DNA from: Lenisia limosa
Taxonomy: Eukaryota > Protista > Breviatea
Assembly: GCA_001655205.1 (NCBI GenBank)
Contig: LPNZ01009474.1
Location: 1 to 32,511 of the forward strand
DNA length: 32,511 bases
Direction: 5' to 3'
The notes under the pieces were generated by a model. That model made no database searches and had not been told where the DNA came from. It saw nothing but the letters and a program-made list of their open reading frames with translations. Positions 2,756-24,200 of this stretch are shown one piece after another (the stretch's first letter is position 1; each line of letters opens with the position of its first letter). The translations under genes and the position numbers were made by a program.

Positions 2756-3266
2756 TGTGGTCCGAAAACTGAAAATGTATGTTTGATTTGACCCTATGCG
2801 ATGGATTTTTCTTTATGATGGATTCACTGCAGTATAATGATGATTTCCCTCAGCACTCTCGGGTTTGCGGTTCGGGGTTGGAGTCTTGGAGTGTGGGAGT
2901 CTTTCATGGGGTAGAATACCTAAATAACGGCGGCCGCGGTCAACAAACCCAATACCAATTTGAAGCAAGTCACCACAAGCTGCCAGCAAGCTCAGCATTC
3001 ACTCAGCAATTATCATCGAATTGATTGAAGTAACAAGAGCTTCATTTCTTCATTTATAACACCATCATTGTTAGCCCTCCAACTCATAACTCATTCCACA
3101 TTTGGTAACCCTTTCACTCAACCACCGATAATATAAACATAAGATGCCCCCATGGTCTCTTGCACAGGTATGGGTCTTTTGATATTTTTTGGATGAGTGT
3201 TACTTCATGACATTTCATACGTCTCCCAAATTTGGACCAATGTAATTTCATGACCCCCCCCCCCCC

Positions 3267-3382
3267 NNNNNNNNNNNNNNNNNNNNNNNNNNNNNNNNNN
3301 NNNNNNNNNNNNNNNNNNNNNNNNNNNNNNNNNNNNNNNNNNNNNNNNNNNNNNNNNNNNNNNNNNNNNNNNNNNNNNNNNN
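3267..3382. other. Assembly gap preceded by C13
   Basis: N run directly after poly-C at 3254-3266. Confidence 0.95.
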
Positions 3383-3911
3383 AAAAAGTTAGCTCCTTCT
3401 TACCTTTTTTTAAAATGGGATAATTCTTTTCTCGACTAATTTGAGCATTTTTCAAGGGAGAAACCCAATACAAAAATATTGTTAAAATTTAGACTTTGCT
3501 AAATGGTATCAGAAAAATCTGTGAAAATGCCCTTGGCATGGCTATTGTTTTACCATAATAATAAAAAGTAGAAACAAATATTTAGCAAAGTTAAAAATGT
3601 TAGCAATCTAGTTCCAAACCATTCACCCTGAATAGGATTAAAATACGCGGAAAAAATCATCGGCCAAAGCCAACAAGTATCTCTTTTCCAGACTTAGGGA
3701 ACTTTCTGGTACAAAAAATGTTATGTAAATTTCCGCAGGAAAATTCAAGAAAATTTAATTTTTTTTAAGCATCCACTCAAGGAGGACTTAAAAGTTCGTA
3801 AATTCACGTCAAATTTGTGGGAACCAGAACACGAACTTCAACAATTTTACATATTGTTACTTAAAATTTGTGTTAGTGAAAATACACTAATGTTTGGTCC
3901 TCACACTGAAG

Positions 3912-8904: not shown

Positions 8905-11900
8905 TTGAGGCAGTGCCACACGTGTCCCCCACGTCTCCCCAGTTCCTATTCAACTATTCCCTTGCCACAGCCAGGCCAAAGCCTCTCTGCAGAACTTGTA
9001 ATGAACACAACGGGGCCTCCAAGGCATTCCGCTGACCTTAGGCAAAGATCTATTGGGAATAACATAAATATTCCCAAGATCACACCTCCAACAAGCAGTC
9101 ACCGCCCTTCTCCGCTTCAAAAAATGTCTTCTTCAACAAGCCAGGTCCTGCAAAAGTCTACTTCAAGCGCCTCTATCTCCTCAGTTGCTTCAACCAAGGA
9201 TGAATCCCTGTTAAAAAGTTCACAAACATTTTCTTCCCCAGTTTTACCAAATGAGCATCTTCTAAATAAGCAAATGAACAAGCCCCTCTTTGAGCCTATG
9301 GTCTGTTGGGTGTTTTTGGTTGACCTTCTAGGGGCTTCAAAGAGCGCAAAGCTTGCAAAGCGCTGATGGCTTCCATCGTGTCCAGGGTAGTCTTGATGGA
9401 ACCAGAAGCCAGATCCTCAATGCCCCTCTAATCTTTGTTTGTCTACTTGAGAGTTTTACTTTTTTAGTCAGGAGAGCTTGTTAAGATGGAAAAAGGCTTT
9501 TTCAAGACGAAGTGGAAGAAGGTATTTGATTGTGCATTTTGTGGTTTTTACAGTGAGTTAAATAAGGATTGGCAAAAAGATTATTTGTAATTTTTCACAA
9601 AATATGTCTTTTTCAATGTGAATTACAAAGTAAGTTGGGTTCGCTAAAAAATTGGTGTATTTTGATCCATTTTGTGGCTTTACCCAATTGAACATGCCCC
9701 ACTACTTGATGACAAACACCGTGAAAAGCAGCAAACTACTTATTTTGAAATCCCCTCAATGGGGGAGGGCTAACTTAAGTACAAGAATTTTCATCATTTT
9801 GATGTTGTATACATACTTATTTTTCATGGTATTACAAATGGTATATTTTTATTTCGTTAAAAACACATCATAAAAGTATACATTTTTAATTTTATGCGAA
9901 AATAGAATAAAATTTATTTTAAATTCCAATAAATTGACACACTTTCCAGGAAATAGACCCAATTGCAACTAGTTATAAGGAAAATCTTCTCCCCGTGCAA
10001 CTCACTGTCTATCAATAATTAGTATTATTTCGGGAGTTAAAAAGGGGGGGGGGGGGNNNNNNNNNNNNNNNNNNNNNNNNNNNNNNNNNNNNNNNNNNNN
10101 NNNNNNNNNNNNNNNNNNNNNNNNNNNNNNNNNNNNNNNNNNNNNNNNNTGTACTATCATATGATATATTGCCAAAATTCTGGTTTTTCGGTAATTTTTT
10201 TTTGCTTTGAATATTGGAGTATTGATATAATATATGCCTTTTTTCAAAGGGTTCAAAATATAATAAATAGAAGGTAAAGCGGGACTAATGTTCAGGTCAT
10301 TTACTCTTAATGACTCAAGAAAACTAAAATGTTACTTCTATTTACTCTCTTTTTCTTCACACTAATTCTACATGAATACAATACAAAACCAGAATTTTCA
10401 AACTGATACGTGCTGGAATAGTAGACAAACATCTGGTAAGTCTTGACCGACAGAATAAGGTTTCTCTTTAGGAAAATCGGATATGAATTTCCACAGGCAG
10501 TGTATTAGTATGATTTATAATAATCATATGAATTTTTAGTTAGACGCCCTTTGAAAAGTCTATTTGTTGATTAATAAAATTTTTTAAAAGACATATTACT
10601 GGATAATAATACATATAGCTATATGATATTATTTAATATCTATATTTAAATCTCAACATTAGTTTATTTTTTTTAAGATGTGACAATCTAGGTTAGGGTA
10701 AAACTGTTTCCTGACGACCTCATTTGGAACATGGATGGCAAGTTATCTAATATTGCTCTTTTCGAAGGGTTTGCTTACTTTTTGTTTGTTGATTGTTTCA
10801 GGGAGGTCATAATCTCTGAAAGTGAATTGCCTTTAAGAGTGTCGGAAAAGGACCCGAGAGTATGTAAATATGATCTCAATGATAGATACTGATACACACG
10901 GAATGAACTGTCATATTATCATTGTTCATTGGACATATCACACGGTTTCATGGGATGATATGGTACATTTCATTATGAAGTTGTTTTTTTTTTTTATCAA
11001 ATTTACAATTTAGATGACCGGATTTCAAATTGTGACACCAACTGATACAGTAGAGTTTAGTGTGAGCGGGCCTGCCGTTAATATTAAAAACCTGCAATTG
11101 ATATTTTGACTCACCAATATTGAAGAAAAATTACCAGGATAAAATACAAAAAGTATATACCACTACTTATAGTACACGAATGAGTATGAGGTTATGGATA
11201 TGATATGCATACATACGCATAAAGGTACGTCACCTGACCGTGAACACTAACCTGACTGTGAATAACCTGGCCGTGAACATCGGACTTATTTTTTTTTGTT
11301 TATTTCATCATAATTGCGATATATATATGATATCCAAAAATTGCCCAAATTTATTTAAAAATGGCTGTTAAATAAGAGAAGAAAATTTCTTGGGAAAATA
11401 AAACACACAAAAAAATCACTGAACTGAACTGAACTGAACTTATTCCATTTATGTCGACTCGATCTAGATTTTTCTTTTGAAAAAACGTTGGGAGTGGTGG
11501 AATTGGCTAACGCAAATGTTTTCCCTTCAACCCCTGGTTCAACAAAACTTGGTTCTCTTTTGTTTTGTTATCCAATGATAATTTGAAATAGTTTTTAGAA
11601 TACTGGAAAGGTAATTGTCAAAAGAGGCTTTTCTTCTAACCAGATACTGTTTTGAGCGAATTTTTTTTGATAGGTTTGGAACTCTTGGTGACACCTCGAA
11701 GAAAAATTTGTATTTAGTTGAACACAAACCCCAGAAAACTGGAGTCTCTGGATCTAGAAGGTTCAGATGAGTCTGTTTCGTTGAAATTTTGTACCGATTT
11801 ACAGCCAATCGAAACAAAAAATTATACTTTTTCATATTTCTCTACGACGAATCAGCAGTATTAGGCATGACATTGATGTACAGCAACTAACTGTAGACTT

Positions 11901-12284: not shown

Positions 12285-15117
12285 CTAGCTTTTGAAAAGG
12301 GACGCGATATAGATGTCACGCCCAGGTACTTCAGGTCGGGGAATGGGAGTGGCAAAACCTACAAGCTGAACGGTGATGATGATTGATAGAAGGCCAACCT
12401 TTGGAATGACGTCGTAGTTTACTCTCCTTCCCTTAGAACCTTTTCTATCTACCTTCTTGCGGGTCTTAGTTTTGAGCTTCTCTGCTGCAAGCCATTCTTG
12501 TGTAGCTTGAAGAGGATCGTCTAACGTGGTGACAAAGCAAGAGCGAAAGTAAACAAGGTAGATGCAAGCTCACGAGTGGCAGCGCTAGCGACTGTTGATT
12601 CAACAGCTTCTTTGACAAGAATGTGGTGGAAATCAGAATCATCATAAACCTCATTATCATGATGGTCAAAGAGCTAGATCGTCAATTCGAAAATACCACT
12701 AACATCTCGCCCAGCACGATCCTGAGTCACTTTCATTCTGGATTTTGTTTGCCCCAAAACCTAAAGGGTGATTTAATGTTGTATAAAGAGAATACAAGAA
12801 TTACATCACTTTATGATGAAGCTACAATGTATCATGTTTTATTGTCGCAAACAGTATAAGATCCACGCTTCAGTCTTGACCGTGTCAGAACTCTTTCACG
12901 GTCGTTCAAAACAGATTCAATTTGGTCGTTTGTTGACTAAAAGTAAACTATCTGAGGCTTGGGTACCTTGCTGAGTGCTTTGAATTCTTTTTGATTTGTA
13001 CCAGTGGCGAGAGCAACTTTAGCACTCCACTTATCAATTGAGTCAAGCTTGAACTTTTGGAACCTAGATTATATATAACCCAAGCAAACCTTGAGTTGCT
13101 TGATTTCGCCATTTTCCAAAGGTTATTAGGAGCAGCGTCATCCAGCTGAATATAGTCACGTACACAACCTTCTCACCTCATCAACCGGTCCAAGGTCTCC
13201 GATATCTTTGCGGTCTTTTGACATGGTCTAAAATGTCATATCACTGACACTCTTCAAGTGACCAAAGAATCCTCACCCTTCTAAATTGAATGAGTTCCTT
13301 CAAAAGGTCCTCAGCCTCCTTGATTCCTTCATCTAACGCGTCGACAATGCCTTCGTCCTTCTTAAAGAAGCTCAGAGTATCATGCTATATATCGTGAAGG
13401 AATTTTTTTTCCATGAAAGATAAAGAAGGAGAGAATGAAACTATTTACTGAAGAGATGACCAACATGGGGAAGACAGTTGGCAGCCTGGAGAGCAGGGTG
13501 AAGTAGAACTCTGCTGTCAATAGAGCGACGCCAAAGTGTCTGGGGGGGGGGGNNNNNNNNNNNNNNNNNNNNNNNNNNNNNNNNNNNNNNNNNNNNNNNN
13601 NNNNNNNNNNNNNNNNNNNNNNNNNNNNNNNNNNNNNNNNNNNNNNNNNNNNNNNNNNNNNNNNNNNNNNNNNNNNNNNNNNNNNNNNNNNNNNNNNNNN
13701 NNNNNNNNNNNNNNNNNNNNNNNNNNNNNNNNNNNNNNNNNNNNNNNNNNNNNNNNNNNNNNNNNNNNNNNNNNNNNNNNNNNNNNNNNNNNNNNNNNNN
13801 NNNNNNNNNNNNNNNNNNNNNNNNNNNNNNNNNNNNNNNNNNNNNNNNNNNNNNNNNNNNNNNNNNGCTGAAACACATTAGGGTTAATAAAAACAACAAC
13901 AAAACAAAGTCAGACCAGTCGCTTCGTTAGATAAAAAACATGTAGTACATAATATGTATGTATCTGGGCATGATTAAAGCCGGTATACTTCAATCACCGT
14001 TAATAAGATGGGGGGAGATATTGTCGTGAAATTCCATTTTCTTTCAGGTTCACCCCCCTACTCCCATCTATTATCCATCCAAAACCCTTATTCACTAGCT
14101 TCCTAAAATAAATATCAATGTTGTTTTTTGGCAATTTGGACCATACCCCCACCTTAAAATTGCTGATTACACCCACAACACTACCCCCCTCATACATGCA
14201 TCACACAGCATCTTTCAACCCCCCTCCCCACACCTAGACTGACAATTGACTTCTCAATCCTTCCATACAATAATCATAATAATATTAATGTCAATAAACC
14301 AGCTCCTCAAATATTCATTTATCTTCGATATCTGACTCACCTTTTGATTTTTTGCATGGACAGCCTTCTTTTCCTCCGACTGTTGAGAAGATTTCAGCTT
14401 TTCAACCTGAAGTCTGTTCCCATTAGTGATGAATTTCACCCAACTTTTCTTCAATTTGAATTTCTTTGAGTTCATCTTCGATTTTCTTCTTTTCAGCCTC
14501 AAGGTCATCCTCCCCCATCCCCGTTGCAAGCATTGCAGTCATTGTTTGACCCTTCTCTTGAAAGATGATACCACGATTCTCTAACAAACCTTCGTTGTCT
14601 TCTTCATCTGAAGTTTCCTCATCTTCTTCCAATTCTGATTCAAAATCATTTTCTTCTTCATTGAAATCATCTTCTTCCTCATCACTGCTACTCATCGCAT
14701 CGAGATCATGAGTTTCTTGTTCTTGGACATGAGGAAGAAAGGACGACTGTAAACTTACCAAAAAATGCATTTCGAGAAGCCTTTTTACCAGAATACTACA
14801 GTGATCAGCGAATGAAGGGCATGCAGGTGCACATAAGAAAACAGGGTGATGTACCTTTCCTTTAGACAGGCTTTGATCAACTCCACGAAGTCTTCGGCCT
14901 TCATTTTTGGATGATGGCTTCTTTCTAAGGGGAATTATGAGTTCAGGTATTTTGTGAAGCCAACCCGGTATCAATTTTGGTATCAAAAGTTTCAAAATGT
15001 GCATGATCAAGTCCAAAATCATCAGGATCGTCCGCTTCTAGATGGTAAAATATTTCGTGAATAATTACCTGGAGAAGCAGACATCAAAGAGTCCAAGGAC
15101 AGTTTACTACTCATCAT
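12285..15117 (-). CDS. AATF: AATF / Bfr2 (small-subunit processome component)
   Basis: MMSSKLSLDSLMSASPEADDPD...GRRLRG...YSGKKASR, acidic tract, KAVHAKNQK|TLWRRSIDSRVLLHPAL, and the TRAUB-type C-terminus VYDDSDFHHILVKE...QEWLAAEKLKTKTRKKVDRKGSKGRRVNYDVIPKLVGFATP...IASLFKS*. Confidence 0.93.
13553..13866. other. Assembly gap preceded by G11 (AATF intron)
   Basis: N run directly after poly-G at 13542-13552. Confidence 0.95.
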
Positions 15118-15564
15118 TTTCTTCTTATTTCCCGATAGCAGAGCAGATTTATTTGGTTGTTACTTTGTAATTTGTGGAGAAAACAAAAAGCCACTGAAAC
15201 ATGGAGTAGTAGAATATATTATTTAAGTTGAAAAGTTGGAAGTAAAGTGTCAAAGTGCTTAATTCCCTCAAGCTGGCCTCAAGCAATTGAAGCAACCACA
15301 AACAATACTCTTGCCGCTTCTGCTGCGAGACACACTCCCTCCTCCTTCTCTGCTTCAAGCCATCGAGTTCGTCTCTTCGAGGTACTGACTGTCATCCTTG
15401 TTGAAGAAAGACCAAAACTCCAAAACTTAAGAGTAAGGGACTCTAACTCTGTACGTCGGCTACCTGGTCATATACGCATTGTCCCGAAGATATTTTGGGG
15501 ATTCGCAAAATAGTAATTCCTCAGTTTCTCTTCAGCAACCGACACCCTCAACCCATTGACCAAA
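15118..15564. promoter_or_regulatory. Divergent interval between AATF and the ANK-kinase-PARP gene (may include extra 5' exons)
   Basis: 447 nt between divergent ATGs; contains splice-like signals (see findings). Confidence 0.35.
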
Positions 15565-18500
15565 ATGGCCAGTAAGATGAAAAGTTTAAAAGCATTGCAA
15601 GGTGCAATCCTTTCAAAGGTGGGCTAGAAATTGGTTTAACCATTGGGTAATAAAAACCTTATTGTTTTTAGAATCTTTGGGAGGCAATTGAAAAAAATAA
15701 TATTGAGCAAACAAAGCGCTACATTATCGAAGGTGGCGATCTTGATTTCAAACTGAACGGAGTTTGTGGGGTTTTGTTTTCTTGGATGAAGTGAAGACCG
15801 GTTGAGATAGGGGTTTTTAAAACCATTTTAAAAGACATGTTTTTTTTTTTTTTTTTTTACATTCATAGCCCAATAAGGTATACTCTCTATTTTTGTGAAA
15901 CCGTTTTTAAACTAAGTGTATTGAAATAAACTAATAACTAACACACAATAGCCCTTCTCGTCGAAGGAGCTTGCCTATATGGCTTCGACTCAAATGAAAT
16001 CGCTCATCAAGTATTACGTTCGCGGGATGAATAAATCTTAAAGTAGTACTACTTTTGCATGAATTTCTTCTGTCCTTAACATTTCTTGAATGTTACTCCA
16101 GTTATATTTTTTTTAACAAGTCCTATTTAGGAAGTATTCCCACTTCATTGGGCTTCAGAGTTTGGAAACAAAGAAATGGTCTCAAATATGCTTGCAAAAA
16201 AACATGACGTCAATGGGCTTGACAAAGAAGTATGATAACCACCCAAACACCCCCTTTTCATTTGAGTTAATTTCTCATATTATAGGATAACACTCCCCTT
16301 CATAAGGCATGTGCATCAGGAAATATACTGGTGGTGGATGTACTTCTTCAGAATGGAGCCTCTTTGAGTTTGAAAAACAAGGTAATCGCCTATTTGCTTA
16401 CGGTGTAGTTTGTGCCAGAAACCAAAAAAGGAGCACCAGTTTGTTCCGAAGCTATTCCCGGTGATAATCCATTGTTTGTAGCATGTCAAAATGGACATGT
16501 TGATATTGTTGAAAAATTGATACGCAGTGGTGAAGATTTGTTCTCAAAAAATAACTCCGTTTGACTTTTTTTATCCATCTTATGTTAGGGAGACTCTGTT
16601 CTTGATGTTCTCTTTAGAAGAGGGGAATTCAAAAATAACATCTACAAACTTGTCGTTTGCTCGTTTTCTTATTTCTGACCATTAGACCCTTCATCAACAA
16701 CGACATTCACACAAACTTAATGAGAGGTTTGAGGAGCTCCAAAATGTAAGGTCTTTCAAAGTAGTAATCCTTCAGAATGTGGAGCATAAAGTAAGAAATT
16801 TTTCTTCCGTGAACCAGAAAGAGGTTATTGAAAAATTGTACTGTTTGTTAAGCGATGTTGGTTTTATTTATTTTGATTGAAGCAGAATGAAAAACAGGCA
16901 AGTCAACCCCAAGAATCCATAGACCCACCTCTTGCATCGGTATTTAGCTATTGCCATTTGACGTTTTAGAATGAAATTTTTGATGTAGTAACCCGTTACG
17001 TCAATGACCCCAATATGGACACAGCTTGCAACCCTCTCCAAGAAGAACTCTTCAAACAACAACGGCTCTCAATTAAGAGAGTGTGTTATCTTTTCGGCTA
17101 TCTACGAGGTGAAATTCAAATTGGTGGAGTTGCTGTTGCCTCAATACTCTCGCAATTGGCTAATTTTGCAAAAAAATACCTCATTGACCTCAAAAATCTG
17201 CTTGTTGACCATTGGAAACAAGAAATGGGGTTAGCTAATATCATCTCTTAGAATTTTCCTGTTTCATACTTATATTCTTTCAGACCAATGCACTCTCTTG
17301 AAAGTGACTTAGAGAGATTGAAGAAAGATTTTGAAGGACTGTCATCCTCAAATCAGTGCATGTGTTCAGCATTGACACTTCAAAAAGCGGATGATATGAA
17401 CACAAAAATGAAGGTTTGCTCAGCGCTTCTGCTTTTTTTGTTCTGTCAATAAGATTTCATTATTTTCAGCGCTGTCGAAGTGCTCTGAGCAATATTGAAC
17501 GGTTAAATGACGAGAATTCTCCAACAATCAACCAAAAAAATGAGCTCCTTGCTGATTTCGTTTCTTTTATGGAGAGTTCTGATAGTACGTTTAGAATGGT
17601 ATTGTTGACAACTCACTTTTTAGATATTGAAAACAGAAGAGATGGAAAATATGATATGACTGAAGCTCTTGATACTGTCAGAACCATTGAAAACGAGTTG
17701 GAAAGAGTATCCAGCCAGTTCGCAGAGTTTGATAAATCCATTCAAGACAAAATCTACTTCACTTCGGACTTAATAACAGCCACAACAAGACTGATAGACT
17801 TTTCAGAAGTAGCAATCAAGGCTACAACTAATCATCAATTAGACGAGGTTCGTGAGGCTAAGACATTTGTGGATCATTTCTTTCCATATGTTTCTTATAC
17901 GTAGCTAAATACATGTTCTTTCTCACTTATAGCACTTGTCAAGCTTCTAAGTCTTTAGGCAAACCTTCAATTTTGCGAAGGGTATGACTCATTACGTGAT
18001 TCCATGGAAGATACTTTGAGACGATTGAACGAAATTCCCCGACTTCAGACTGAAAGAATTTTACAGAATACTTGTCAAATTGATGTAAGAGCACCTGTTA
18101 TAAAATTAATTTTGCATGTTCATTGCCATTCTGGTGTCATGTTTTAGCTGTCGCACTTTAACCAATTGATCAAAGAAGTTGAGAGAAAGTACACGGAAAA
18201 TTATCAAGGTTACATCCAGGAGAGCTTCAATGTGGAACAGGTAGGTTATTTTTTTGTCGTCACTTTTCAGATATCAAAACGTGCTTATGAGTTCCTTTCG
18301 AAAATCAAGGAAGCAGAACAGTATACTGATATCCAAAAACTTACAGATGCTCATAAAGCATACTTGCAAGCCAAAACAGACTACGATATTAAGGATTCGG
18401 TTGAAAAAACTTTGACAGCAAGTTTGTTCCACTTCTCTAGTCTTACTTGAACAGAAAATGCCTACCTAAGAATTAGACAGAAATATCTTCAATTTGCTGC

Positions 18501-21079
18501 AACACTGTACCCTGAATTCAAGTTTGATAAAATGGTAACACGTGGTTGTTTTCATTCTGTAGTTCCAACAAGCTACTGGTGTAGTGGACATGTTGTACAA
18601 CCCCTTGCTTGATATGGAAAATGATTACAAAGTAAGGGCTCGAAGTGTGAAACGTATTCTTAAATTCCATTTAGGAGTCAGAGTATCCACTTCAAGAGAG
18701 CAATAACAGCATCATTGCCCTGGTTCATCTTGAGAGCGGAGAGGAGGTCGTTCATAAGGTATGAAGGTTTCAGGTCAACTTCATGGAAATGGCCATTTAT
18801 GTTTCACCTTTTTAGTCTGTGAGCAGATCCATAGCAAGATCAGAACTCTCAGTCGCTCTCACACTGAAACATCCATCAATCCTCTCCCCCTTAAAGTAAG
18901 TCCATGATTGCCTTTAATTATTCTAGGTATTTTAATTCAGGCTCTCATACAACTATTCTCGAATTTCCGCGAATGAAAGAATCCCTCTACCAATTTCTTT
19001 TGAAAGAGCCTTGTCTGTCCCCCGAAGAAGTGATCCAAAAATGTTACGACTTATCCCAAGCTCTCTATCACATCCACTCTCAGAATATTACTCATCGTGA
19101 TATCAAAGTTTGTCATGAGCTTTAAAATTTTTTACAATTTAGCCCCAAAACATTTTGGTTGATAAGAGCGGCCGACTTTTGCTGACCGACTTTGGTATCA
19201 GTAATGTTGGTTTGGGAGTGTAATGGATAAAGTAACCCATTAGATGGACACCTTCAAAACCATTCAACAAACATTCGTTAACTCAACTAGCATTGGTGGT
19301 GGTACTCCTGCTTATATGGCTCCTGAAGTCGGTTATTCATTCGCATAACATTTTTAGTGTTTTATATCCAAAGTTCAAAATGAAGATCTTTCTAAATGTG
19401 ATGTTTACTCCTTAGGTACTTTTGGGTAGTATAATAGTACTTATCTCCAAGGTCTTGTTTTCTTTTCTCTGCTTGTCCCCGAGTCATTGAAATCGATTTC
19501 TGCTTTGAATATACAAACTTGGTAATTGGCAAAGAAATGATTAGATGTGCCAGCGATTGTTTTTGCTTTCACCACTTAGGGCTGACATCTCGCAAAGTTT
19601 TGCTCAAAATATTCCACTACTCGAAACATTGATTAAATCCATGTTAAATCAGATTCCGTCGCAAAGACCTACAGCTCAGGAACTTGTTGAAACAATTGGT
19701 GATGTAAGTTACAAGACATGGTAATAATTTTGTAGATCCAAGCAAAGTTCTTCAAAGAACAGAATCGTCACTCAACAGCCAACCTGTAAGCATAACATTG
19801 ACGCAATTAATCATCAAAAAGGATGAAACTGAAAAAAACAACTGAGCTTCTGAAATCTGTATCTGATGAGAATAAAAAGCAAAGGTTGGTTGGATGCGAC
19901 AAGGATTAATGATATTATATAGTCGTCAACTCCAAGAAAGCAGAAATACTGTTACGTTTCTCAAGGTTCGATTAGAATTCACTCTTTCAATACAAAACAG
20001 AAAATAGACTGAATGACCACTAACTTCTACAGGAAATCAACAAGGATTGTAATCCCCCTGTGTACTGGACCTCCAAATCTCCGTAAGATAGTAAATCATT
20101 TCATTGTTTAAGGTACTCCCAAACCAATCTGGATGGAACAAAAACTATGAATGAAATACGTGAGATACTTAAGACAGGTTGCAAGCGTAAGTCCTTGTTC
20201 AAGGAGCTTGACTTTCTAGACAACTGTAGTGGTCGGGATGGGGTACGTATAATGGTACCTGAGGTTTGTGATGCTGTTATTAAGTTATTCACATTCTTAA
20301 GATCAGTGAGGTGTACCGTGTAGAAAACACAAAGCTGTGGAAGCGGTATTCATCAGCAAGACAGAATATTGCTGATTTATCTCGGGAAACTTCAGGCGTT
20401 TCGGTTTGCCAGCCTACCTTTTCTAACACCAAATAGACTCGAAGTGACATTTGGTTGAAAAATGGAAGTTTGATGAAAGCTGCCGGCGAAGTTTATCTTG
20501 TTCATGGATGCCCCAATATAGTAGGACCTGAGGTTTTTTTATCAAATAGGCGTTGGACAACATTAAGCACTATGGATTTGACATCCGATACGCTTCAAGA
20601 TCAGCTTTTGGCAAGGGTATTTATTTTGCAGACCAAGTGAGATTGACTAAAGTTTTAACATCTCAGCTGTGTAAATCAACGCAGTACATCAACGAAATGA
20701 ACAAGGGTCATTTAATTATCTCAAGGTTTGATTGATGAAGACCTTCCTTATTGTTGAAGAGTTTGCCTTGGTACTGTGGCCGAAACAGATTCTTCCCAGG
20801 AATGCGAAGTAAGTTTCTTTCATTTTCAATCTCAAAAATAGGACCTCAGAACTGAGCCTTGCTTGGTGAATTATAGTACCGGTAAACTGCAGAATTGCGT
20901 AAGGAATTTGTTAATCATTCTCTTTTCTAGACATGTACCCCGCACCATTGCAGTAATTCTCTTTACGCTAAGTTCAAGCATAATGAATATGTCATCTTTG
21001 AAGGAGCCCAAGTAGGAATAGATTATGTAAATTGACAATGTAGTGTTATCCTGAATACGTCATTGAGCTGAAGTGGTAA
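15565..21079 (+). CDS. Multidomain ankyrin-repeat / alpha-helical / Ser-Thr protein kinase / PARP-catalytic (ADP-ribosyltransferase) fusion protein
   Basis: Ankyrin repeats (FPLHWASEFGN, TPLHKACASGN, NPLFVACQNGH; about 15672-16620). Kinase about 18615-19710 (VVHK, alphaC Glu in ARSEL, HRDIKPQN, DFG, GTPAYMAPE, DVYSLG, RPTAQE). PARP domain about 20033-21079 (PVYW, VYRVEN..LW.RY, YLVHG, FGKGIYFA, KSTQY, RVCLG, NEYVIFEGAQCYPEYVI). A canonical GT-AG path joins the domains without stops; the start ATG is tentative and some junctions in the helical region are ambiguous. Confidence 0.88.
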
Positions 21080-21203
21080 TTTTTTTGTGTGTAATACTTA
21101 AACTGTTCCTTATTTTCATTTTCTCTTGTCCAATAAACATCTCATTTATCAAAGGAAGACTGGAAGATCAAAAACTAATCATAGATTATTCATAAATCAC
21201 AAT

Positions 21204-24200
21204 TTACTCCTCTGCCTCAGCCAAACTCAGAAATACCTAGAAAGTCAGAAACTTCAGAATGGTTGAATCAACACACATCTTCCAACGAAGTCATAGAGAT
21301 TTCAACCTCGTTGCAGCACAGCTCATCTTGTGTCTTGATGTGACTTATTATCTGGGAGATAACATTTCAACATTCATCATACTTTTGGAATTTGTGACGC
21401 ATACAACTCAGGTACTGAAAATGTAACACAATCTGATCTAAAATGTCATCTTTCAAAAAAGATCCGACTTCATTCTGAGCTTAGACGCGAATGTGTAAAA
21501 GGAAGACACTCTTCTGGTAAGCAGCTTAGGTTTTGATGTGAAAAATTGGATCTATCATTGTGTAAACTTATAAGAGAGCTTGCCCACGATATAACCTGGA
21601 CCGTATTTGTTTTTGAGATGCAGAGATGAGCCCAATGCTGATACTACAAATGAGAAATCAAAGAAATTTCGGATACCTTTTCCCTTAGACATAATCACAA
21701 TTTTATCAGACAAAATTGATGCTTCCTCCATTGAGTGCTAAGAAGGTCACCAACAAAAAGTATTACAGTTGTCAGAACAATCACTCTGTCTTTCTTGGCT
21801 TTTTCCATAAATGACCAAACTTGTCTGCGTGACATAGGATCCATACCAGTGGTCTATACGGTGAGAGAGCATCAGTCCTACGGGCTCATCGAGGAACACA
21901 ATTCTGGGGTCTCCAACCATAGCAATAGCAACACTGAGTCGACGTTTTGTACCACCACTACTCTGTCAGAAGAACAAAATACACACCTGAAGGACCTTGC
22001 TGCAGAGTGGGCAACAGACTCCAAGTTCAATTCCTCAAGACGTGATGCAATTTCATCTTCAACCTAAAAGTCAGTCATTAGCAAAGACAAATGACGCACC
22101 AAATAGTCAGGGATACCCTTCATGCAGGAAAAGAGTTCAATATGTTCAGAACTGGTAAGGTCGTCGAAGAGAATGTCATGTTGGGGGCCTTGTCCGTGAA
22201 ACAGATCAAGATTAACAGATCCCCAATCCCAGCATACATACACCAAGGATAGCTCTGATATTCTGCATTTGAGATGAGATTGGGAAACCTCCAATAAGTG
22301 CATCTCCTGAATTGTAAAGTCAGAAGGCACTCACCAGCTGATGGTCCAAACATTCCAGTAAGCATATTGATTGTTGTTGTTTTACCGGCGCCGTTATGTC
22401 CAAGAAGACATAGGAGGTGACTCTTTTGGGCGTCAAATGTGATACCTTGAACTGCATGAAACACTCTTTTCCCGCAGCATCCTGAAAGGTATCAGCATGA
22501 AGTCGTTCAACCTTTTTTGGCAACAAAAGTCTTCTCAAGATTAACAACAGAGAGTTCAGCAGGATTTTCATTATCTAAAACCATCATGGTCAAGAACTAT
22601 TCCTACTGATAACTCTGCAGTGCTCTTGCCAAACATCCCGAGGCATTTCTTCCTCAAGATCCTTTGATGGTGTTGCCTTGCTCAGGTTATGGGAGTGAGG
22701 CTTCGCTAAAAAGTAAAGACTACTCCCTCTACTTACAACTCCAATAAGAAGGAAGGAGGAAGTACCACGGTTTCAAGGATATTCCAAAGGAACCTATGAT
22801 ATCTATCAAGATGGAAATACGGCCAACCTTTCATGACATTATCCAGATACATGCCAAGAACAGTGAAGAATACAGCGGAAAAAGCAAGCCACTTGTAGAC
22901 CTGTAGATGAGAAGATGAAACTGTGACCAACAGTTAAGAGGGGCCAGAAACCATCATTGATGTCACTCCATCTCATTCCATCAGAATCGGCTCTAGCACT
23001 ATATGAAGATATGACGGATATGCCTCGGCTCAGCATCACGAAAGGGAAAATAGAAACGACATTCTGCGAAGTGAACAAAAGCACTTCTTACTTGAGTAGT
23101 TGAATCCATTTCGGGATCAAAGATGAAGCCAGAAATGAGTTGCGCTAAGAGACCAACTAAAAACAGAGTGAATCCGAAGCTTGTAGCAGTTCGAGCCCTA
23201 AATTGTCAACAATAAAATATTGCAAACTTTGACACAAAGGCAGTCATAGTGACCGTGAAAGGGGTCATGCTCACTGCAGTCAAGAGAAAAAGGATGATGT
23301 AGGTCATTGGTTCATTCTGTTGAATCAAATGGGATTATACAGCAAACTTTCGTGAAGAAATTAAAATCAAAAGCCAAACTCGAACTAATGAGAAGAATCA
23401 CAGTTACAAAATTGAAGAACTACACTCATAAGCAAGAAACTTCATACAATGTTGTTGAAGTACCAAGACATCCAGTATGCCGAGTCTCTCATTCCCATGA
23501 CACTCATGCTTTCGCGAAGATGTACTTCTTTTTCAAGAACAATCTGGCCTGACAAAATCATAATACCTACTAACATACCCAACTGTAGAACGCTATTGAA
23601 GCATAAGGCACCAAAGAAGAAAACAGGCCCCTGCTCAGCAACAACTGGATCACAAGTGAGTAGATCACAAAAGAACAAACCATCATAGGGATTAATTTCA
23701 GGATGAGGCATATCACTTCGTTGGACTTCATAGTGAAAATTGGGATTATCTGATGACCACTTCACTGCATGGTGGTAAGTTTCTTTAATAATTCCTACTA
23801 ATGGCTCTCTCGACTGCAACTTGAAGCGGAATTAGTACCTCAATTGAAGGGTAGTACGGCTTCTTCCTCAAATAGGTAAGTGTCTTGTTGTATTGGATAT
23901 TGTAGGAGATTCGTTGGGTCCCCTCATCAGTCGTCTCCACCGCAATCACCAAGCCTGGTCAATAAGATTACAGAATGAAACAGAAAGGCTGAATAATCTA
24001 CTCACCAGATTGAGTGAAGTTACTCTTGGAGTAGAAAGCGTCGTCCATTTGACTTGAAGATTCATATCGTGAGTACTTCCCTTCACCGATGCCATTGTCA
24101 AGGAGAAGCTGATCTGTCATGGATAACAATAGGGCAAACATAATTGATGATGGGCATTGCAGCGTCGTTAGCAACAAAACCAAGCGTCTCACATGATGTC

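Follow-up and report, generated by a model that had tools for sequence, protein, structure and literature searches.

Does the intron-rich locus at 15565–21079 on the forward strand of a Lenisia limosa contig (LPNZ01009474.1, analysed over its whole length of 32,511 nt and called the window below) encode one protein in which ankyrin (ANK) repeats and a long helical region precede both a protein kinase and a PARP catalytic domain, or does it comprise two adjacent genes? Lenisia limosa belongs to the breviates, protists that are relatives of animals and fungi. The occurrence of all four parts in a single reading frame, with the PARP domain at the C-terminal end, is supported by the analysis described here, and the locus is most likely one gene with a product of about 1,190 residues. 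Taken as a whole, an expressed single-gene fusion with the domain roles proposed below is probably the best explanation of the data.

Gene structure and expression

The initial annotation had traced an open GT-AG path from the ANK repeats through the kinase to the PARP domain, running without a stop up to position 21077. An independent reconstruction reproduces this path as 41 exons separated by 40 GT-AG introns, which together encode 1,191 residues (Table 1), and the previously given linker peptide between the kinase and PARP domains matches exons 29–31 of the new model exactly. The introns are 26–190 nt long, mostly 26–40 nt. An in-frame stop lies close upstream of the start codon (15511–15516). 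A few joins are ambiguous, namely 16368/16452 and the candidate in-frame mini-introns at 16746–75, 16791–817 and 18241–70. Most other open reading frames (ORFs) in the neighbourhood have no Pfam match. The domain assignments come from searches with short exon pieces and not with the whole spliced protein, and their E-values are weak.

Table 1. Features of the ANK–helical–kinase–PARP locus (positions in the window)
Feature	Position	Strand	Basis
Start ATG; stop TAA	15565; 21077–21079	+	Rebuilt gene model
Exon 1, with start codon	15565–15618	+	Gene model, sequence reading
Ankyrin-repeat region, ~4–5 repeats, exons 2–7, model residues ~20–186	15672–16651	+	Pfam Ank, RNA-confirmed introns
Confirmed introns, ANK part	16018–16130, 16230–16285	+	PolyA RNA contigs
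Helical region, ~450 aa, exons 8–19	16686–18534	+	AF2 model, five RNA-confirmed introns; no Pfam family
Confirmed introns, helical part	17230–17283, 17414–17469, 17585–17623, 17848–17958, 18085–18147	+	PolyA RNA contigs
Protein kinase domain, exons 20–28	18563–19703	+	Pfam Pkinase on three exons, collinear profile positions
Kinase motifs VVHK; HRDIK then PQN; DFG; APE	18747–58; 19093–19107 then 19143–51; 19188–96; 19319–27	+	Coordinates verified
Intron directly 3′ of kinase, 32 nt, GTAAGT...TGTAG	19704–19735	+	Donor 8.7, acceptor 9.6; best-scoring parse
Linker exon 29, 50 nt, decides one gene versus two	19736–19785	+	Codon usage, path test
Intron, 36 nt, GTAAGC...AAAAG	19786–19821	+	Splice scores, path test
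Linker exon 30, in-frame ATG at 19823	19822–19884	+	Codon usage, path score
Linker exon 31	19923–19965	+	Codon usage, path score
PARP catalytic domain, exons 32–41, to the stop	20033–21079	+	Pfam PARP, tankyrase matches, motifs
PARP triad His (LVHG); Tyr (GIYFAD); Glu (HNEYVIF)	20503–05; 20622–24; 20985–87	+	Verified
Further PARP Tyr	20685–87	+	Motif coordinates

At least the 5′ half of the gene is expressed; polyA RNA contigs show the removal of seven introns, two in the ANK part and five in the helical region. In the RNA run, the share of sampled words of the locus that are present is 0.35. Because the 5′ half and the upstream sequence (as a 5′ UTR) could supply 0.25, the 3′ half appears to be expressed as well.

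Pfam Ank matches fall at 16131–16229 (E 1e-4) and 16454–16558 (E 3e-7), in an ANK part that comprises only ~167 residues ahead of the helical region. The latter had also been described as long and helical, and this description holds: an AF2 model of the piece at 17470–17847 is all-helical (pLDDT 76, pTM 0.34). It matches no known Pfam family and has no internal repeats above the level of shuffles. Among 1.84 billion representative proteins the sole match to the helical region is the genome's own 162-residue ORF, so no orthologue or paralogue with a comparable architecture is found, and a lineage-specific origin would be the best explanation of this sequence. The atlas look-alikes of the helical pieces are bacterial four-helix-bundle sensor domains alone, with sub-threshold scores (0.76–0.83) that make them a lead only.

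The kinase and PARP domains

The Pfam Pkinase profile is matched at positions 76–125 by exon 23 (18928–19107, E 1.6e-7), carries on at 126–145 in exon 24 (19143–19205), i.e. across the join that splits HRDIK from PQN, and is taken up again by the last kinase exon (28) at 236–259 of 263, position 259 being reached at 19703. The motifs HRDIKPQN, DFG and APE, already recognised in the initial annotation, lie at verified coordinates and, together with the β3 Lys, are all intact in this PF00069 domain. The sequence GTPAYMAPE presumably is STE-like, and a Ser/Thr-type kinase would best explain the domain. The expected position of the glycine-rich loop reads LQESNNSIIAL, with no glycines, and GxGxxG is absent from all frames of 18455–18760. 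As this loop is not recognisable, the regulatory role that had been proposed for the kinase is not assured.

The Pfam PARP profile matches exons 36–37 over positions 63–93 of 199 with an E-value of 0.01, a score that misses the curated cut-off owing to the shortness of the piece; 84 of 100 atlas look-alikes are PF00644. By sequence match, the 231-residue catalytic domain belongs to the PARP superfamily (PF00644). Motif alignment to tankyrase, read with established knowledge of the family, indicates an H-Y-E NAD+-binding triad, and an STQY motif is also present. A metagenome scan with the PARP piece returned two short contigs with generic PARPs (40–48% identity), which were used to validate exon joins alone. 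One contiguous metagenomic PARP ORF aligns collinearly at 39% identity over 66 residues, spanning three exon joins of the model, and these joins are validated by this alignment. A scan for related viral loci found no relatives. In PDB searches, tankyrases are the only PARPs among the matches listed for exon 36 (E 0.27–1) and exon 34 (E 0.6–1.3), at collinear positions; searches with exons 25, 35 and 40 gave spurious matches or none.

The kinase–PARP junction

The end of the kinase is connected to the first PARP exon by a charged linker of 52 residues, in which a 38-nt intron (19885–19922) separates exons 30 and 31; the next introns of the model lie at 19966–20032, 20083–20112 and 20187–20284. 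The reading frame through exon 29 depends on the removal of two mini-introns. Retention of the 32-nt intron would stop the frame at 19725 and retention of the 36-nt intron at 19787; the splice scores of the former are typical of the gene's other introns. A plain stop-free GT-AG path was rejected as evidence for one gene, since 326 of 500 shuffles (65%) also have one, and a scored splice parse was used in place of this test. The best-scoring parse of the linker is the frame-preserving path. Its score is reached by none of 400 shuffles of the whole linker and, over the critical 118 nt, by 14 of 2000 shuffles and 3 of 243 real intergenic substitutes (p ~0.007–0.012). The codon log-odds of exon 29 are 5.3, compared to 5.6 ± 2.9 in coding windows, and 1–4% of non-coding windows reach this value; for the whole linker they are 26.4 in frame, whereas the two alternative frames give −5.7 and 4.4.

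The locus could instead hold two same-strand genes, an ANK–helical–kinase gene that ends at 19725 or 19787 and a small stand-alone PARP gene that starts at the in-frame ATG of exon 30 and encodes a separate protein of 267 residues. That ATG and the in-frame stops that begin both mini-introns fit such an arrangement, and some stop-free GT-AG path often arises in random sequence. No RNA contig spans the junction or the surrounding region 18197–21300. At 19704–19821, 4 of 10 sampled words are present in the RNA run versus 10 of 10 in the DNA run. This share is compatible with partial retention too, but it is about equally likely with exon 29 spliced or with one mini-intron retained and is therefore counted neither way. 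A homologue search with the ORFs at 19545–19721 and 18904–19122 gave no matches, not even to themselves, the contig's short ORFs being absent from the collection. Two genes would, however, have to accommodate a poly(A) site and a promoter in 33–95 nt, with only 95 nt from the would-be stop to the next ATG, whereas the flanking intergenic spaces in the window measure several hundred nt. The gap from 19704 to 19822 contains no AATAAA, the best-scoring parse is exactly the one that preserves the frame, and exon 29 is coding-like in its codon usage. Two genes are thus improbable, and the kinase and PARP parts very probably belong to one.

Putative function and relation to known systems

Known roles of the individual domains suggest how the fusion protein might work. 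A partner protein would be held by the ANK repeats, and the long helices would serve as a spacer or in oligomerisation. The PARP domain would use NAD+ to ADP-ribosylate itself or the docked partner. The kinase domain might phosphorylate the same complex. Because its glycine-rich loop is degenerate, it might instead work chiefly as a switch through nucleotide binding or dimerisation, as the corresponding domains in RNase L and IRE1 do for the effectors that follow them. If either of the mini-introns flanking exon 29 were retained, the product would have the kinase but no PARP domain; the amount of PARP-bearing protein could thus be controlled by splicing.

Two other readings keep the single gene but assign different roles to its enzymatic parts. 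If the kinase domain is a pseudokinase that serves nucleotide binding or dimerisation only, the protein would be an ankyrin-targeted PARP with no dual modification. The glycine-free loop argues for this, as does the fact that, among solved structures, the pseudokinase STK40 matches the main kinase exon best (E 0.007), but most pseudokinases have lost at least one of the β3 Lys, HRD, DFG and APE elements, all of which are intact here, and the short N-lobe exons could be mis-joined; a pseudokinase is unlikely, though a serious contender. The defence role suggested in the initial annotation, in which the PARP domain is an NAD+-consuming death or defence effector set off by an infection signal, has its context in animals, which employ PARP families in conflicts with viruses. 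However, none of the nameable flanking genes has a defence function (an ABCA-type transporter lies downstream, and the other neighbours are unrelated genes), the viral scan found no relatives, the search of representative proteins shows no paralogue expansion of the helical module, and the H-Y-E triad with tankyrase-type motifs suggests protein ADP-ribosylation and not plain NAD+ hydrolysis. Such an effector is highly doubtful.

If the fusion is real, it brings a kinase and an H-Y-E PARP, each a major post-translational writer, together behind a single targeting module and offers a natural system for studying the coupling of phosphorylation and ADP-ribosylation. The architecture by itself is only a moderate surprise because protists shuffle domains freely. 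A far bolder proposal is a single-chain "dual writer", in which one ankyrin sensor would serve both an active kinase and a tankyrase-type PARP (H-Y-E, no regulatory domain), so that a docked target is phosphorylated and poly-ADP-ribosylated. PARP would then be a general plug-in effector in innate immunity or stress responses of a protist, and the association of ANK repeats with a tankyrase-type catalytic domain would be older than animals; this proposal is speculative and unlikely. A real fusion would also mean that a PARP with ankyrin repeats but no regulatory domain exists in a non-animal lineage. This is relevant to how tankyrases arose, since they have so far been reported from animals only (PMC2964712, PMC4245714).

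The ANK–helical–kinase–PARP combination was found neither in the PARP surveys consulted nor as a described family, in agreement with the initial annotation, which had not recognised it as a characterised one. No homologue of the same architecture was found among the proteins and the metagenomic and viral loci searched, which thus provide no comparative support. The closest parallels are partial. Tankyrases (PARP clade 4; TNKS1/2) likewise have N-terminal ANK repeats, an H-Y-E PARP domain at the C-terminal end with a motif of the EYVI...YPEY type, and no helical regulatory domain, for which there is no room ahead of the PARP domain here. The description "tankyrase-like" is apt for the triad, for this missing regulatory domain and for two exons whose best solved match is a tankyrase (weak, E 0.3–0.6), but it does not extend further. 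Tankyrases have 15–24 ANK repeats, arranged in ARC clusters, compared to 4–5 in the present protein, and a SAM domain where the latter has its 450-residue helical region and kinase. No SAM match was obtained with the exon pieces scanned, whose shortness limits sensitivity, and where tankyrases have their zinc site the present protein lacks a Cys/His cluster. Because it has no SAM domain and only 4–5 ANK repeats, the protein is not a tankyrase; true tankyrases are reported from animals only (PMC2964712, PMC4245714).

Clade 1A or "Clade 1-ank" PARPs, e.g. Dictyostelium ADPRT3 and C. elegans PME-5, are non-animal or atypical PARPs that also join ankyrin repeats to an H-Y-E catalytic domain (PMC2964712, PMC4245714). 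They carry WGR and PRD domains directly ahead of it, whereas the 52 residues between the kinase and PARP domains of the present protein are too few to accommodate either. Ankyrin-repeat kinases (ILK, TNNI3K, ANKK1/RIPK4 and many protist ANK kinases) combine ANK repeats and a kinase in one polypeptide but lack a PARP domain. In RNase L and IRE1, a kinase-like domain is followed by a C-terminal effector, and the N-terminus of RNase L carries ankyrin repeats as well. The likeness to the Lenisia protein would be one of layout, with no sequence relationship claimed: an ankyrin sensor (in RNase L), a kinase or pseudokinase and a C-terminal enzyme, which is a KEN ribonuclease in those proteins and a PARP here, where a helical insert of 450 residues is added.

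Gene model and transcripts

Between 15.5 and 21.1 kb the window, which is eukaryotic and has a G+C content of ~38%, contains no long open reading frame (ORF) and is made up of numerous short stop-free pieces between which the frame shifts. The gene rebuilt here consists of 41 exons and 40 introns and encodes a 1,191-residue protein, with an in-frame stop codon immediately 5′ of its ATG. The introns are 26–190 nt long (26–40 nt in most), all 40 are GT-AG, and a non-AG intron was never required. This independent reconstruction reproduced exactly both the kinase–PARP linker peptide and the stop codon of the initial annotation.

Features of the locus and supporting evidence
Feature	Position	Strand	Evidence
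Gene	ATG 15565 to TAA 21077–21079	+	rebuilt by reading DNA
Pfam Ank	16131–16229	+	E 1e-4
Pfam Ank	16454–16558	+	E 3e-7
Pfam Pkinase	18928–19107	+	E 1.6e-7, profile 76–125
Pfam Pkinase, next exon	19143–19205	+	profile 126–145
Pfam Pkinase, domain end	19581–19703	+	profile 236–259 of 263
Pfam PARP	20550–20725	+	profile 63–93 of 199
RNA-confirmed introns	16018–16130, 16230–16285, 17230–17283, 17414–17469, 17585–17623, 17848–17958, 18085–18147	+	X1 contigs
ABCA-type ABC transporter gene, downstream neighbour	~21500–24000	−	ABC_tran E 4e-9 at 22120–22461; ABC2_membrane_3 at 23442–23816
Locus contig in ENA			ERZ3820729 NODE_142

Two runs of the same study contain the locus: X1, a polyA metatranscriptome from 2016, and X2, a run of unrecorded kind in which every sampled word is present and which we took as DNA. 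RNA contigs of X1 were placed at 15955–16229 and 16988–18196, and in them seven introns are spliced out at exactly the boundaries of the model. One of the seven (17585–17623) is 39 nt long, in frame and stop-free, yet spliced out, so ORF reading alone is untrustworthy for this gene. Three further mini-introns that are in frame, contain no stop and have good splice signals (16746–16775, 16791–16817 and 18241–18270) are unproven candidates, which makes the protein length uncertain by ~30 residues. The join between ankyrin repeats 3 and 4 (16368–16451) is ambiguous: it could be an 84-nt intron whose acceptor is weak, or a 27-nt GT-AG or 33-nt GT-TG intron after 16381, either of which gives a perfect 32-residue ankyrin repeat followed by an insertion of 16–18 residues.

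No X1 contig was placed at 18197–21300. X1 nevertheless contains 0.35 of the 31-mers sampled from 15400–21300 (~216 of 616 words), which exceeds the maximum of 0.25 (154 ± 11 of 616) attainable from the 5′-half exons together with all upstream sequence. Since unspliced contigs would have been placed, polyA RNA very probably contains the 3′ half as chains of short exons, which are hard to place.

The kinase–PARP junction

The initial annotation joined kinase and PARP domain by a stop-free GT-AG path. As bare evidence of fusion such a path was rejected, being allowed in 326 of 500 interval shuffles, and parses were therefore scored by combining donor and acceptor matrices and codon log-odds, trained on the remaining introns and exons of the gene, respectively, with a penalty for each intron. 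The best parse of 19701–20033 is exactly the model (introns 19704–19735, 19786–19821, 19885–19922 and 19966–20032), and its score of 26.6 was reached in none of 400 whole-linker shuffles (−4.2 ± 9.0). In-frame codon usage across the 52-codon linker scores 26.4 bits, compared with −5.7 and 4.4 for the two alternative frames; the corresponding values are 24.2 ± 6.3 for coding windows and at most −7.2 for intron windows.

Alternatively, a kinase gene could stop before a stand-alone PARP gene whose start codon is ATG 19823. Such a gene would share linker exons 30 and 31, and the test was therefore repeated on 19701–19823 alone. The model was again the best parse; 14 of 2000 shuffles and 3 of 243 substitutes taken from real intergenic sequence scored at least as high. 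The 50-nt exon 29, on which the distinction turns, has a coding-typical codon score of 5.3, a value that 1–4% of non-coding windows reach. Two genes would leave just 33–95 nt from stop to start, and this gap lacks the AATAAA that is found 55 nt past the stop at the actual 3′ end. It is highly likely that the kinase and PARP parts belong to one gene.

In the critical 118 nt (19704–19821), 4 of 10 sampled words occur in X1 versus all 10 in X2, so part of this interval is in polyA RNA that is neither plain unspliced RNA nor DNA. The share fits about equally well exon 29 spliced on both sides and one mini-intron retained, and was therefore counted neither for nor against fusion. Either mini-intron flanking exon 29, if retained, halts the frame immediately, so retention could possibly yield kinase-only isoforms.

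Domains of the encoded protein

Domain searches were run on individual exon pieces. The kinase carries the motifs VVHK, HRDIK/PQN, DFG and APE, and its profile continues across the HRDIK/PQN join, which is therefore collinear. Its glycine-rich loop is unrecognisable (LQESNNSIIAL), and among solved structures the main kinase exon is matched best by the pseudokinase STK40 (E 0.007).

In the atlas, 84 of the 100 named clusters closest to the PARP piece are PF00644. Model residues 1059–1122, which cross three exon joins (introns of 29, 30 and 34 nt), align unbroken to a PARP ORF that is itself contiguous on metagenomic contig L001, which confirms how the PARP core is spliced. LVHG, GIYFAD, STQY and HNEYVIF provide the H-Y-E triad, and the protein has the C-terminal motif CYPEYVIELKW. 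A Cys/His-rich stretch (C-x12-C-x-C-x3-HH-C, 20842–20985), immediately N-terminal of the catalytic Glu and away from the tankyrase zinc-site position, may constitute a separate metal site.

The helical region (~450 residues from the ankyrin repeats to the kinase) matched no Pfam family, showed no detectable internal repeat and, in a search of 1.84 billion representative proteins, had no relative but the genome's own ORF. A single-sequence AlphaFold model of 126 of its residues is helical throughout (longest helix, 63 residues), with poor packing confidence.

In X2, the 142 nt at 16576–16717 (exon 7, some of the intron sequence on either side of it and the first part of exon 8) form a separate unitig of ~51–63x depth versus 31–38x in the flanks. 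Two further X2 contigs (23x and 25x) connect it to unrelated flanking sequence, so it has a second genomic context; no second copy lies within the window.

Neighbourhood and known families

The transporter gene is likewise interrupted by tiny introns and runs towards the 3′ end of the PARP gene. Extremely AT-rich sequence (G+C ~10%) occupies 13501–13950, and other AT-rich valleys lie at ~150–600, 3150–3600 and 9900–10350. No context for the suggested defence role was found in the downstream neighbour, among viral relatives (none found) or among helical-module paralogues (none in the same 1.84 billion proteins). Any function of this protein we infer from its domains.

Tankyrases are ANK-SAM-PARP proteins reported only from animals, and clade 1A PARPs are ANK-WGR-PRD-PARP proteins (PMC2964712, PMC4245714). 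Tankyrases are the sole PARPs among the solved-structure matches of exon 36 (E 0.27–1) and exon 34 (E 0.6–1.3), with the two exons aligning in collinear order to the same chains, and the C-terminal motif is tankyrase-type; together these weakly suggest a tankyrase-type catalytic domain. The likeness stops there: ankyrin repeat number, SAM domain and zinc site rule out membership of the tankyrases, and clade 1A is ruled out because WGR and PRD would not fit. The initial annotation is confirmed in its observation and supported only in part in its interpretation.

No kinase–PARP fusion occurs among the many architectures of PMC2964712, PMC4245714 and a 2026 fungal survey or was found by a text search. 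The gene is a variant of two families already known, the PARPs and the ANK kinases, with an apparently new kinase–PARP combination. Its layout of ankyrin repeats, kinase-like domain and C-terminal effector resembles, by analogy only, that of RNase L.
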